A DNA stretch of 64,000 bases from Phaeosaccion multiseriatum. Its lineage: Eukaryota > Protista > Ochrophyta, other classes. Every line of letters starts with the position of its first letter. Position 1 is the first letter of the stretch. Under the pieces are notes generated by a model that was not told the DNA's origin, made no database searches, and saw only the letters and a list, made by a program, of their open reading frames with translations. The position numbers and the translations under genes were made by a program. Where the stretch lies: positions 5,146,001 through 5,210,000 of the forward strand of contig OZ218953.1 in the NCBI GenBank assembly GCA_965112735.1, written 5' to 3'. This document shows, piece after piece, positions 50,274 through 64,000 of the stretch.

Positions 50274-50541
50274 CAGCACGAGCCGCAAGCAATGGCGAAA
50301 AGCCGACACAAGAGACAGAGATAGAGAGGTGTAAGAGAGGAAAGATCGCTAGCTCTTGCTCCGGTTGTGTATACGCAGTTTACTGTAACGAAATAAGTAT
50401 GTACAGTTCTCATTTGGGGTGTTATCCTCTAGACTCCTCCGTCTCCGGAAACGTGCATGGGATTCTCGATATTGGTCGGATTCAGTAAACTGGAAGGCCC
50501 CTCTCCTCCCTCTCCTTCTCTCCTTCTCTCTCCCTCTCTCT

Positions 50542-52896
50542 CTACATGAGCGGAAGGCCGCTCGCATCGCACGAGTACACTGCGTTCAGCTGAGCGGATA
50601 CCGCCGCCACCTTGCCTGGCCAGGAGCAGCTTGGCTTGCAGCAGTCCTGTCAGAGGGAGTTGGTGATACAGAGGAAGGATGGAAGGGAGGGAGGGAAGGG
50701 AGAGGATCAGAGGGAGGAAGTCCAGTCCACGGTGGGTGTAGGCTGCACAGCGAGGAGTCAGGGAGGAGTCACAGATCGACCAACCTGCATGGTGGTGGTG
50801 TAACCGTTGTTCGTGTACTCGAGGCTCGGAGAGGCGCGGGGTAGGTCTGTGTCGTCGGTTCGAGCCATGCCTGCGTGGTGAGTAGGGAGGATGTGGGCAA
50901 GTGCTAGGGTGAGACAGGCGAGGAGCAGCGACAAGGCAGGCCAGGCAGGCAGCGGGAGGGAGGGAGGGCGTTGAACCATGTTGGGCCTTGCACACACACA
51001 CACACGGTTGCTCACCCGTTACCCTCGTGAGCGTCTCTGGACATCGGATTCGCGCGTAGGACACTTCAAAGTTACTGTGCCAGCCTTGCGAAAGCGCTTG
51101 CTTGCAAGCCCTTATGAGGGTGGAGTCCTTGTAGTTCCCTATCTCCCTGCAGAGAGGAGTTGCGAAGGAGAGGTGAGGGGAGAGGTTAGGTAGTTTGGTT
51201 GGCATTCGTCGGCGAGCATACGCTGGGCAATCCACCTCTCAAATAAGGGGAGAGAGAGAGACAGAGAGACAGAGGGGGCGAGAGAAAGAGAGAGATTCAG
51301 AGAGATACGCAGTGAGAGGGGGAAAGAGCGAGAGAGAGAGACACCGAGAGAGTGCGATAGAGATATACACACAGTGAGAGAAGGATACAAAGACAGACGC
51401 GCGCAACCCGCTTACTCTGTGGAGAGAGCATCGCATTCATCCACGCTGTGTGCTCCTCCGGTGAAGCACGATCCCCCGGGGGCCCAGGCGGCCGTAGTGC
51501 CTGCAAACATGCCGTGTGGGGCATTGGAGCACGTGCCGCAGCCCGAGGAAGCGGCGCAGTCCCCAGAGCAGGCGTTGAACAGACCCAAACCGCCTGGGAA
51601 GAGAGGGAGGGTGGGAGGGCGGATCGTAAGGGGGGTGAGAGAGAAGATAGAGAGAGAGACGCACACAGAGAGAGAGAACAGGAGAGAGAGAGAGAGCAGA
51701 GAGAGCGATAGAGAGACAGGGAGAGAGGCAGTGGGTGGCTCTTTCAATTGAAGGGAAGGTGGGTAAGAGAGGGAAGTACGCAAGCAGACGTATCAGGCAA
51801 AAAGCAGGGAATTTGCAACCGGTTTCGCTGTTTGAGAGAGAGAGCGGGACGAAGAAACACGTGCAACCCAGTGTAAGCCCCCCACCCACACACACACACT
51901 CTCTCCCTCTCTCTCTCCTCACCTCCGGCAACGTGAATGTCGAACTGCCCCTGAGACACATCTGAGCCTGAGTTGACGGCTTGCACAATCCACAACCTGT
52001 CAGGGTGTCCGTCCGGGTCCTCGGCCTTTAATTGGTAGCATGTACCACATTCAGCGTCACTGCCCAGGCCCGCTACCGCATACACCGCCCAGTGGTTCCC
52101 GTCCATCTCTGCTGCAAACTTCATATCGGGGGTGAGAAGCAGAGTCGAGGGGCAGGCGAAGGAGGTTGCTCCCTCAGTACCCCCCCCTCCACAAGCGCTT
52201 TCCCCATCCTTGATATAGGCGGCAGAGGAGAATGGAGCGTAAATGCCCAAGTAGCCCTGAATCCAAGATCCCCAAGACCACAGAGGGATGGGCCGGGCGG
52301 GGGGCTGCTCTGGGATCATCACACTGGCCCCAGGAGGCGCCACAGGGGGAGGACGAGGAGGGGGCGTGGGGGGTGCTGTTGTTTCGGCCTGTGTTGGGCT
52401 CGGTGTGGGAGGTGGAGTGGCGTCGGGGTCCGGTACGCATTGACTGTACCACTCGTTGCCGTACTGGTTGGGCAGGGCAACAGCGAGAGAGACGAGGAGG
52501 GACAGGGAGGATTAGGGAGAAGGGATGGATCCGGGGGTTTGGTGAGAAGGACGGGAGTCGTAATGGAGCACGGGTAAGCCACGCTGCACCCACCTGACAC
52601 ATGTCGCCTTGCTCGCAGCAGAGAGCCCCAGTCCATCCAACCCCCCCACACTTCTGCCACCGCTCATTGCATGCGAGTATGGGGTCCGCTCCAACTGACG
52701 GTGAAGAGGTTGCCTCTTCTTCTCCTGCCCCTCCCGTCGTCTGAGGAGCTGCTTCTCCTTCTGTAGTCTGAGGACCTGTTTCTCCTCCAGTCGTCTGAGG
52801 ACCTGCTTCTCCTCCAGTCGTCTCAGGAGCTCCTGTCTGCAGGAGAAGGACCAAGCAAGTGACTATTGCCTTGAGACCTTGCTTCATTTTACTCAT
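50542..52896 (-). CDS. Secreted CBM1 + glycoside hydrolase family 45 endoglucanase, circularly permuted, 6 exons
   Basis: Exons 52896-52594, 52463-51923, 51593-51416, 51146-51016, 50870-50785 and 50646-50542 are all GT-AG and in phase. CBM1: CNERWQKCGGVGWTGALCCEQGDMCQ|YGNEWYSQC. Pro/Thr linker. GH45 motifs CGTCYQL, IVQAVNSGSDVSQGQFDIHVAGGGLGLFNAC, CPETLTRVTG and terminal TTTMQDCCKPSCSWPGK. Confidence 0.9.
52730..52830 (-). repeat. 27-nt coding tandem repeat (P[EQ]TT[GE]GE[AT]G, about 4 copies) upstream of the CBM1
   Basis: PETTGGEAG PQTTGGETG PQTTEGEAA PQTTGGAG. Confidence 0.8.
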
Positions 52897-60380: not shown

Positions 60381-61916
60381 TTAGGTCTTGTCTTTGCTTC
60401 CCGTAGCAACGCCAGAGTCGGACACGGAGGCCTCGAAGAACCTCCTCTTCCTGTCCCTCTCTGCCCTTGCCTCATCCGACTCGATCACGCTGTCTGCGCT
60501 CAGCAGCTTGGCCACCCGCCGCATCGTGAAGCTCAGTCTCACGCTTCCATTGCCTCTACTGCTGCTGCTGCGGCTGCTGCTGCTGCTACAGCTACTGCTG
60601 CTGCTACTTCCGTCTCTGTGGCCAGTTACCATCAACTCCTGCTCCTCCTGCTCCTCCTCCTTCCCCCCATCCACACTGGCTTGAATGAGGCCAACGCCAG
60701 GGCCAGCATCAGCGCCAGCATCAGTGCCAGCATCATCATCTGCTGCTCTTGCCTGGGAGTACGGTAAGATGCCGTGCCAGTAGTCCGAGTACGCCTCTCC
60801 GGTGAACACAAGCAGGCTGCGATGCTCCAGGAGCACGGACAAGGAAGCCTGCTTCTCCGCCGCCGCAGCATTATTGCCATGTCTCCCTCCTCCTCCTCCT
60901 CCTCCTTCCGCGGCCTCTGCGGAGGGCCAAAAGTGCAGCGTGGCCGAAGCGCCCAGAGACAGAATGGCCACACACGGCTCGTACAAAGGACCGTCCTTGT
61001 GCGCGCTGATGCCCTGCCCGTTGCGGTACTCGTTCAGGAGAATGTGATTGGGTGGGCCAATGCCCGAGCCAATGCCCGAGCCAGAGCCTGTGTCAGAGGA
61101 GGTTAAGGCTGCGTCTGCGGGGAAGACCTGACGGTCTGCGAGTAGACGCAGTAGCTCCGACAGGCAATGAGGTATGGGCTCCGGAACTTGAGGAGGTGCA
61201 AGAAAGATTATGGGGGGGAGAAGCAAACAACAAATCAGGCGAGGGTTGGGCTGGCTCCACATTATGTGTTGGTCAGTAGGTCAGTAACCGCGCCCCCGAA
61301 GTAGGCGATGAGCTACTTTCCTCCCTATCTTCGCCACCCCCCCTTCATACTCACCCATTCCATCAGGGCTCGGGTAGCCGCCGACGACCTGAAGTCGTCG
61401 ATTGTGAAGGTCTTTCCACTCTCTCTTGCGGCTCGTGTCCCCACTGCCAAAGTGGTCGTCGTTTTCGGTTGTAGCGTAGGTTGCGGTCTGCAGCTCCATA
61501 GCGTCTCTTTCCGTGACAAAGTTCGGTACCAGATACACTCCTTCAATGCACGTTTGCTCATCCCCTTCCTCGCCACCACTCCTCCGCACGGCAAAGCGTT
61601 CCAGCGGAAGAGGGCTTCGCGGTGTGGAGAAGGACACCGTTTCGGTTCCTCCGACGGAGCTGCTGCTGCTGCTGCTGCCACTCTTAGATTCGCTCCGCTT
61701 TGCACGCATTTTCCTTCTCTCCTGCGCGAGGAGAACTTTAAAATCTATCGCGGTGCTCAAGCCATTATCATCCATAGCTGCCCCCCCCCTGAAGGACGAC
61801 GCCGCTCCTCTACCAACCCCCGCTTCACTGGGAGCGAGCCGAAGCAAAGTCAAGAGCAGGAGTGGCAATAGTCGGCCAGGCTTATCCTCCATGAAGACCG
61901 GGGGGACTATGCGCAT
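60381..61916 (-). CDS. ALKBH6: AlkB-family 2OG-Fe(II) dioxygenase, ALKBH6-like, 2 exons
   Basis: VYLVPNFVTE, WKDLHNRRLQVVGG, PNHILLNEYRNGQGISAHKDGPLYEPCVAILSLG (HxD), RSLLVFTGEAYSDYWHGI (distal H) and RLSFTMRRV (RxxxxxR). The intron joins GM-V-PEP in phase. Start codon uncertain (61916, 61893 or further downstream). Confidence 0.85.
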
Positions 61917-62118
61917 ATGCGGGAATCATCCCCCCCCCCCCCGCTTTCCCCGTTGGTACTGTACTCCATTCACAGCTGGCGGGCCCTCCAAGCTCCCCTC
62001 TCCCCTTTTCTCTCCTCCTCTTCTTCAAGGAAGGGGTCCAAGTCGCCTCAGATTAACTAGTAGGAGGGTGTATCTCACCGAGGATACGAAGCTGGAAGGC
62101 AGCACCGGAATAGACAAG

Positions 62119-64000
62119 ATGGATGGATGTCCTTGTCAGCCAAGGAGAAGGAGGAGAAGGAGGGGTGGTGGGCACTTGTCAGTGCTTACCTGTGCCCTAC
62201 TCCTCGCTGCTGCGGCAGCACCAGCGCTCGCATGGAGCTCAGGAGGGTCGTTCCTACAGTCCCACCGCCACACCCGCCTCTCCCAGCAGTGTAGAGCACG
62301 AGCACGACAAGGAGGTGCACGATGTGCAAGGCCGACATCTCTCTCGATGAAGTTCCAGCAGCTGGAAGACCTGAAGGAAGGCGTGATTAAGAATGACCCA
62401 GAGTGGCAGTTCTTTGACGTGGCCAAGATTAACGTCAAGGGGGGGGACGGAGGAGATGGCTGTGTGGCTTTTCGAAGAGAAAAGGGCATTGCCTTCGGAG
62501 GGCCCAGTGGGGGCTCAGGAGGAGACGGAGGCTCCATCATCCTCAGATGCGATAAGCGCCAGAACACCCTGTCGTCAGTGCGGAACAAGGTGCACCACAA
62601 AGCAACCAAGGGACAGACAGGACAGGTGGGTAGGTGTGGACGTTTTTGCCCTGACTCGCTGCTTCCATGTCATGACAAGGTTTGGGTGGTGCTTGACTCA
62701 CTGCTTCCATTGTACCTGCCTTCTATTGATGTAAATATATACTCATGAGATAGATGCCACAGCTTTGGGTCCCAATTCTTTCTCAGTTTCGTTTCGTCTT
62801 TCTTGTCCCCTCGCCTTTCCCACAATGGTGAAGTAGCCCCCCCCCTAATACCACCGCCACCACCACCACCACCACCACCACCACCACCACCGCCTCCTCG
62901 TCCTCCTCCTCGTCCTCCTCCTCCTCCTCCTCCGCCTCCTCCCCAACCTCACAACCAAAAAACCGCAGGGCAAAAGTCGACACGGCACCGCAGGCAAAGG
63001 CGTCGTCGTAACGTGCCCCCCAGGCACCGTTGTAAGGGACGAGGAGGGCAACCTCTGCGGCGAGCTCAAGGAAGAGGGGCAAGAGATGGTGGTGGCCAAG
63101 GGGGGGAGAGGGGGGAGGGGAAACGAGGCATTCAAGACCAGCAGAAACATCGCACCCAAGCTGGGGGAGGTGGGGGAGCCGGGAGCGGAGCGATGGTTGA
63201 ACCTCGAGCTGAAGCTCATTGCCGACGTTGGGCTTGTGGGGGTGCCAAATGCGGGTAAGTCAGTAAGTCAGTAAGTCAGTGATGAAGCGTGTAAGGGAGA
63301 CGAGTGATTTGAATTGAACGAATTATTACACACGCATCCGATGGTGTTGTGTAAATAAGAGTGAGAGACTACAGAACCAACTTCCTTTTCTTTCTTTCGT
63401 TCTCTCTGGTTTTGGTTGCGTACTGTTTTCTCTTCCATTTCCCTTCTCCCTTTCCCCGCGACACCGACATGCATTCATTCAGTCAATTCTTTCATTCATT
63501 CATTCATTCATTCCATGTCTTCCCATGTATGTCGGGCGCTGTCTGTTCTCTGTTGCTTCTCTCCTCTTCCACCCCCTCCCCCTCCTCCCCTTTCTCCTCC
63601 TCGTCCTCCTCCTCCTCGTCCTTCTCCTCGTCCTCCTCCTCGTCGCTCGGTAGGCAAGAGCACTCTGCTCGGGGCTATCAGTAACGCACGCCCAAAGATT
63701 GCAGACTACCCCTTCACCACCGTTACTCCTAATCTCGGCGTTTGTGACTCCCGGGAAATCATGAACGAGGGAGAAGGCGTGGTGCTCGCAGACATCCCCG
63801 GCTTGCTGGAGGGGTGAGTAGGATAGTCAGTCCCTTGAGTCCCTTGTGAGTGGCTTGGCGTACAGTGCCTTCCTTTGCCTTGCCTTTGCTTTGCATTGCT
63901 ATATATTCTGCGCGCCTCGTGAACGTCATGCCCTTGCCCTTTCCTTTTCTTTGCTGTCATCGTGGTTCCCCCTCCGGCTGTCTTCCGGACGAAGCGTTAG
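62119..64000 (+). CDS. obgE: Obg/CgtA GTPase, probably plastid-targeted, 3'-truncated, at least 3 exons in the window
   Basis: [25 protein letters not shown] (Obg fold), [18 protein letters not shown]|KSTLL (G1), [10 protein letters not shown] (G2), [10 protein letters not shown] (G3). Presequence [17 protein letters not shown]. Confidence 0.93.

Follow-up and report, generated by a model that had tools for sequence, protein, structure and literature searches.

A GH45-like domain carrying its catalytic-base segment last in Phaeosaccion multiseriatum, and the widespread clade that shares this order

Can a glycoside hydrolase family 45 (GH45) domain carry at its end the catalytic-base strand that canonically stands at the domain's N-terminus? 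The question is raised by a six-exon gene on the minus strand (52896..50542) of a 64,000-nucleotide stretch of Phaeosaccion multiseriatum DNA (contig OZ218953.1, positions 5,146,001 to 5,210,000), the whole of which we refer to as the window. The original prediction, made from the letters of the window, held that the first ~35 residues of the usual domain had shifted to the C-terminus, and out-of-order matches to Pfam, to solved GH45 chains and to a bacterial GH45 profile bear this out. In the protein as predicted the core comes first and the base segment last, and, judging by these matches, the opening ~40 residues of the ordinary GH45 fold, including the base Asp and four cysteines, have almost certainly moved to the protein's far end. 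We have very little doubt that this is a GH45 domain in circularly permuted form.

The order in which the pieces of the protein fit the Pfam GH45 model (PF02015) is the same two-segment, out-of-order pattern that the original prediction had proposed as a check. The exon 2 piece matched profile positions 44-135 (E 9.5e-4, 19.6 bits), and the 34-aa piece from exon 6 matched positions 9-37 (E 1.5e-4, 22.2 bits). Scored separately, both window pieces fall under the model's cut-off of 27 bits, and membership in GH45 by sequence is assigned from their E-values together with a relative, P0001, and A1, a profile built from 63 permuted members. Exon 6 was searched over 50551-50646, and a 32-aa part of it matches solved GH45 chains at residues 10-39 (best E 2.6e-5), while exon 2 matches residues 73-143 of PDB entry 5h4u. 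P0001 matched the Pfam model with 44.3 bits, its residues 1-270 corresponding to profile positions 40-213 (E 2.5e-11) and its residues 271-318 to positions 2-38. Profile A1 matched solved GH45 chains with E ~1e-21 in three out-of-order stretches, i.e., positions 272-311 to chain residues 2-36, 92-158 to 73-135, and 215-258 to 162-206. When A1 was compared by hhalign with 45 canonical bacterial GH45 domains, positions ~50-246 aligned to 41-225 (probability 99.6%) and positions 273-318 to 2-43 (probability 92.8%), the first 25 columns of the alignment to canonical GH45 having the lowest confidence. These out-of-order matches indicate a chain that was opened ~30-35 residues after the base Asp and whose old termini were joined. 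A second downstream GH45 domain had been named in advance as a finding that would speak against a permutation; tblastn with the gene model retrieved neither a second domain nor any other GH45 piece in the 64-kb window, so exon 6 is not the start of one.

Read on the minus strand with its exons joined, the gene yields an in-frame coding sequence of 1344 nt (447 aa), and all five introns are GT..AG. The GH45-like motifs were all found where the original prediction had placed them, with the six-exon frame intact; both Asp codons that it regarded as kept are present, and the gene model agrees with it in having no D-C-C-K motif upstream of the core. The features of the gene are as follows.

Exon 1, 52594..52896, minus strand: start codon, hydrophobic signal-like N-terminus, four Thr/Gly-rich repeats (P[EQ]TTGGE..) and CBM1 positions 1-23.
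Exon 2, 51923..52463, minus strand: end of CBM1 (YGNEWYSQC), Pro/Thr linker, N-terminal PLWSW stretch specific to the family, and first half of the permuted core, to QFDIHVAGG.
Exon 3, 51416..51593, minus strand: GGLGLFNAC and the Cys-rich loop region of the core.
Exon 4, 51016..51146, minus strand: helical part and RCPETLTRVTG, the counterpart of canonical QCPxEL..TG near the old C-terminus.
Exon 5, 50785..50870, minus strand: MARTDD (old C-terminus), connector of ~17 residues and start of the moved strand (GYTTTMQ).
Exon 6, 50542..50646, minus strand: moved N-terminal GH45 segment, DCCKPSCSWPGK...VYSCDASG, then stop.
Acid Asp codon (QFDI), 51941-51939, minus strand: in exon 2.
Base Asp codon (DCCKPSC), 50646-50644, minus strand: in exon 6.
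Third Asp (GSDVS), just upstream of the acid Asp, minus strand: in exon 2.
Stop codon, 50544-50542, minus strand: in exon 6.

From exon to exon, with slashes for exon boundaries, the core motifs run ESACGGGG..FACP, CGTCYQL, VQAVNSGSDVSQGQFDIHVAGG/GLGLFNAC, RCPETLTRVTG/MARTDD, the connector and GYTTTMQ/DCCKPSCSWPGK..VYSCDASG. Per the family alignment, every splice junction restores a motif that is unbroken in intronless relatives (e.g., TTTMQ/DCCKPSC and RVTG/MARTDD), all five junctions are gap-free, with that of exon 3 aligned to the relatives' GAGGFGIYDAC motif, and the spliced window protein aligns end to end with these relatives. The composition of the gene is host-like (~58% GC). The locus very probably represents an intact, intron-bearing nuclear gene for a modular glycoside hydrolase that is predicted to be secreted.

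The window gene is not unique but one member of a widespread permuted clade. The original prediction had proposed a search for other proteins with a C-terminal DCCKPSC, and about 100 relatives were found to show the same permuted order in uninterrupted open reading frames (ORFs), which means that the order is not an artefact of splicing. A word-index homologue search with the exon 2 ORF came back blank, the likely cause being the word index, as relatives of 286-341 aa pass the length filter; exhaustive phmmer with the exon 2 half retrieved 32 cluster representatives. In every full-length one, the acid motif QFD[IV] comes first and D-C-C-K-P-S/A-C stands ~30-45 residues from the C-terminus. Searching again with the nearest relative, P0001, brought in ~60 further proteins, all permuted except one distant canonical protein of Fibromonadaceae. 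One phmmer candidate, P0010 (1934 aa, 25 matching stretches), was dropped from the family as an unrelated repeat protein.

These relatives come from diverse genomic contexts. P0001 is present in two copies, both uninterrupted ORFs, on a 588-kb contig, and P0002, also uninterrupted, adjoins ABC-transporter genes in a bacterial-looking NCBI assembly. P0065, entered as 'Glycoside hydrolase family 45 protein [Oopsacas minuta]', is an uninterrupted nuclear gene of the sponge, flanked by the genes for filamin and STT3 on a contig of 1 Mb. Several permuted members adjoin major-capsid genes of nucleocytoplasmic large DNA viruses (NCLDV) or sit in dense giant-virus-like contigs, and 17 full-length copies came from a scan of IMG/VR, almost all of them in giant-virus bins and each a single ORF with the permuted order. 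In a scan of one genome per bacterial species, 64 loci gave colinear matches that extend through the C-terminal segment; they belong to Fibrobacterota (Fibrobacter, Chitinispirillaceae) and Myxococcota (Polyangia, Polyangiaceae, Anaeromyxobacter, Sorangium). Eleven of the 64 were aligned and inspected and 14 were placed in the tree; the 11 inspected loci encode multidomain proteins of 440-800 aa whose C-terminus reads ..VTGC.L..(connector)..TTTMQDCCKP[ST]CAW..FYSCD.NG.P.

Further observations concern individual members. A GH5 cellulase (PF00150) adjoins the permuted GH45 gene or lies two genes from it in two giant-virus-like contigs (L006:4885-5829 and L028:8555-9511), which suggests a viral cellulase pair of GH5 and permuted GH45. 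The permuted GH45 of L062 (NZGS01000127.1, 1181-2317), in a metagenome-assembled genome (MAG) labelled 'Rhodospirillaceae bacterium MED674', falls inside giant-virus clade 2 beside P0108, which shares its contig with an NCLDV capsid gene; the L062 contig is probably a piece of a giant-virus genome that was mis-binned into a bacterial MAG. In the ESM Atlas, two Myxococcota clusters of 62 and 67 members, both with the name 'Cellulase family protein' (Pfam GH45 in 0-18% of members), align structurally across the whole permuted model, C-terminal segment included, and probably represent the bacterial permuted clade, largely unannotated. P0003 and P0038 (JGI metagenome, 370 aa) have an additional Cys-rich C-terminal module beyond the moved segment.

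For phylogenetic placement, canonical bacterial GH45 domains were re-ordered in silico solely for the alignment. The permuted sequences all split from these re-ordered domains with support of 100/99, and they form a bacterial clade of Myxococcota and Fibrobacterota, two giant-virus clades, a small group of P0002, P0102 and P0003, and a clade with the Oopsacas gene. The window protein is the moderately supported sister of this last clade (94/88 in one tree and 86/68 in another) and shares at most 45-47% identity with any other sequence. The tree is consistent with one permutation event followed by horizontal spread across Fibrobacterota, Myxococcota, giant viruses, a sponge and an alga. More tentatively, and with somewhat less than even confidence, we suggest that one ancient permutation gave rise to a distinct, unnamed GH45 subfamily that moved among cellulolytic bacteria, giant viruses and eukaryotes (sponges and algae), and in which the C-terminal base strand would alter substrate contacts or regulation. 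No protein with the base DCC motif at both ends was seen among the relatives and canonical GH45 proteins examined. The conserved P.LW.W stretch was considered as a relic of the old N-terminal segment, as from a tandem-duplication intermediate, and found no support, with an hhalign probability of 0.2% between N- and C-terminal segments.

Both catalytic residues expected of GH45 were found in the window protein, a proton-donor Asp in the ..FD.. loop and a base Asp in D-C-C-K-P-S-C. Of the aligned permuted members, 98/98 have the acid Asp, 98/98 the base Asp and 94/98 the third Asp; the window protein has all three, along with all 16 family cysteines, the four of the moved segment included. The P0003/P0038 lineage has lost the first Cys of the moved segment along with the Cys that follows the acid loop, as a retained disulfide between segment and core would predict. 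This paired loss may be taken as a hint of such a bond, the lineage being a single event and a copy from a giant-virus MAG (L014) having lost only the first of the two. The subgroups differ in further residues: the bacterial permuted members retain the CC.C triplet of canonical GH45 as well as the Cys of ..TGC.. and have no third Asp (GSDV), and the eukaryotic and viral members read C..C and TG[ILM] at these sites and keep the third Asp, which indicates that in them both cysteines were lost together.

The superposition proposed in the original prediction was run on the relative P0001, and its model matched subfamily A with the permuted pieces outside the sequential alignment. The AlphaFold2 model has a mean pLDDT (predicted local distance difference test) of 93.3 and a pTM (predicted template modelling score) of 0.89, and its C-terminal segment, predicted with pLDDT 96-98, contains strands at 274-281 and 299-304. 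In Foldseek against the PDB, the model's ten best matches are all subfamily A GH45 enzymes, and VIA-align superposed 162-174 residues on them with Z 12.5-14.2 and a root-mean-square deviation of 2.6-2.9 A. The alignment spans model residues 44/48 to 260/269 and chain residues ~25/38 to 207/214, thus leaving out the first 25-37 residues of the chain and the last ~50 of the model, as a permutation predicts. Subfamily B and C enzymes, expansins and MltA reach at most Z 4.4 against the model. P0001 is thereby predicted to have the six-stranded double-psi beta-barrel of subfamily A. The permuted order was not found in any solved structure in the Foldseek PDB comparison, and BFVD models of viral proteins returned no match to it.

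Subfamily A is known from the structures of Humicola insolens EGV/Cel45A (2ENG/3ENG/4ENG), Melanocarpus albomyces 20K (1OA7/1L8F), and the Thielavia terrestris (5GLX), Neurospora crassa (6MVI) and Cryptopygus antarcticus (5H4U) enzymes. The permuted clade shares with it the fold, as predicted for P0001, and the motifs DCCKPSC.W with the base Asp, C.CY.L, VQ..N.G.D....FD with the acid Asp, and CP..L..TG..R.DD; like many subfamily A enzymes that are joined to a CBM1 by a linker, the window protein has both CBM1 and linker. Unlike subfamily A, the permuted clade places canonical residues ~2-40 last, after a connector of ~17-45 residues, and has an extra conserved N-terminal stretch, P.LW.W. Its eukaryotic and viral members differ further in having C..C for CC.C and in the lost Cys of TGC, and TMQ replaces RYW before the base Asp (TTMQ-D versus TRYW-D). 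The closest canonical sequences are bacterial GH45 domains (Cellvibrio-type CBM2-CBM10-GH45 and P0100 of Fibromonadaceae), which have the DV..GQFDI..GGG acid loop in common with the permuted clade, whereas their base motif lies ~116 residues before the acid motif. Natural circular permutation is known from other glycoside hydrolase families, in GH70 glucansucrases relative to GH13 and in the Fibrobacter succinogenes GH16 lichenase relative to Bacillus GH16. As in these cases, a whole natural clade appears to have kept its fold and catalytic residues with its termini relocated; the folds and families are different ones.

From these likenesses a way of working can be proposed for the window protein. 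In the predicted protein the old C-terminus (..CP..L..TG..R.DD) runs through the ~17-residue connector into the old N-terminus (TTTMQ-DCCKPSC-W...VYSC), and with the old termini so joined the base-Asp strand and its four disulfide cysteines are made last. The folded domain would most likely rebuild the six-stranded double-psi barrel of GH45 and its groove, in which beta-1,4-glucan would be cleaved by the usual inverting mechanism with the QFD Asp (51941-51939) as proton donor and the DCC Asp (50646-50644) as base, and CBM1 would direct the enzyme to cellulose. The window domain is probably an active inverting beta-1,4-endoglucanase.

Several points weigh against parts of this picture. The four sequencing runs that were sampled hold 98-99% of sampled words, introns too, and so resemble genomic DNA; the splice junctions are predicted from the sequence and the family alignment. 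The structure was modelled on P0001 with A1, a relative 45-51% identical to the window protein, and not on the window protein itself; the moved C-terminal segment would occupy the place of canonical residues 1-37, bringing the two catalytic Asp opposite one another in the groove. Given TTMQ-D in place of canonical TRYW-D, substrate contacts may differ, and no assayed member of the permuted clade was found. Lastly, the outgroup of the tree comprised canonical bacterial GH45 only, and the backbone of the permuted side is otherwise poorly resolved, so that a single origin is consistent with the data but unproven.

One alternative is that the gene model is wrong, with exon 6 a chance or fossil GH45 fragment or the start of a second domain, and a real protein that is shorter and has no catalytic base; the donor of intron 5, GTTGGT, is of a less common kind. 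We consider this highly improbable, as the exon 5/6 junction exactly restores TTTMQDCCKPSC, which dozens of intronless relatives carry unbroken, none of the five junctions opens a gap in the family alignment, the 64 kb holds no further GH45 piece, and the open frame runs to a stop where the relatives end too. The many relatives in giant-virus genomes raise the idea that the window gene is a recent giant-virus insertion and not a host gene. There is very little chance of this, however, for a gene with five spliceosomal introns, host-like GC content, a CBM1 fusion and cellular neighbour genes with no viral hallmark, the product of which falls outside both viral clades as sister to the sponge clade (94/88) and is no more than 47% identical to any relative.

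A different possibility accepts the GH45 fold and doubts the endoglucanase activity, the protein then being a non-hydrolytic, expansin- or loosenin-like wall-loosening protein or an enzyme acting on a non-cellulose glycan. Both the replacement of the canonical aromatics before the base Asp (RYW-D) by TMQ-D and the want of an assayed clade member leave room for it, and expansins and cerato-platanins are weak structural neighbours of the P0001 model. Nevertheless, expansin-like folds reach only Z ~3, whereas all neighbours with Z above 12 are active subfamily A endoglucanases; both catalytic Asp residues are kept in 98/98 members and the third in 94/98; and the CBM1 fusion and the GH5 cellulase beside viral copies fit a cellulose substrate. 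We therefore regard such a protein as unlikely, and favour the reading of a permuted, active endoglucanase.

A domain of this order is easily missed by annotation. When five bacterial permuted members were compared with the Pfam GH45 model at its 27-bit cut-off, three scored 26.9-28.4 bits and two had no match, and neither NCBIfam nor PHROGs holds a model for permuted GH45. Profile-based annotation of carbohydrate-active enzymes covers only part of permuted GH45 proteins, and with such weak detection the cellulase inventories of Fibrobacterota, Myxococcota, giant viruses and marine eukaryotes are probably undercounted. No report of circular permutation in GH45 or in a double-psi barrel hydrolase was found in the full-text literature searched, whose coverage excludes most subscription journals, and the permuted GH45 clade is apparently undescribed. 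It offers a natural test of how far the GH45 double-psi barrel tolerates moving the base-carrying strand and four disulfide cysteines, and, spanning bacteria, giant viruses, a sponge and an alga, it should be a useful marker for horizontal transfer of wall-degrading enzymes. The GH5 genes beside viral copies suggest a role in attack on host walls or scales. The alga, for its part, would gain a secreted glucanase targeted by CBM1, with possible uses in feeding or in the remodelling of walls or scales.

The predicted architecture of the whole window protein is a signal peptide, Thr/Gly repeats, CBM1, a Pro/Thr linker and the GH45-like domain. We infer the N-terminal signal peptide from its hydrophobic sequence. 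The CBM1, a Cys-knot module of roughly 29-36 residues that binds cellulose, was recognised from exon 1 alone, which scored 23.7 bits against the Pfam CBM_1 cut-off of 20.6 over profile positions 1-23 of 29; the module is split by intron 1, and its remainder, ..N.WYSQC, opens exon 2. Between the signal-like segment and CBM1 lie four imperfect 9-residue Thr/Gly-rich repeats (P[EQ]TTGGE.G; 52740-52860, minus strand), which may form an O-glycosylated spacer.

Near the GH45 gene no viral hallmark genes were detected, and its neighbours are ordinary cellular genes. An ORF at 60381-61262 on the minus strand encodes a 2OG-Fe(II) oxygenase domain (E 2.9e-12), and one at 61513-62748 on the plus strand a GTP1/OBG domain (E 1.4e-23). 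Directly 3' of the stop codon of the GH45 gene is a GA-rich stretch, which together with the last two codons occupies 50498-50548.

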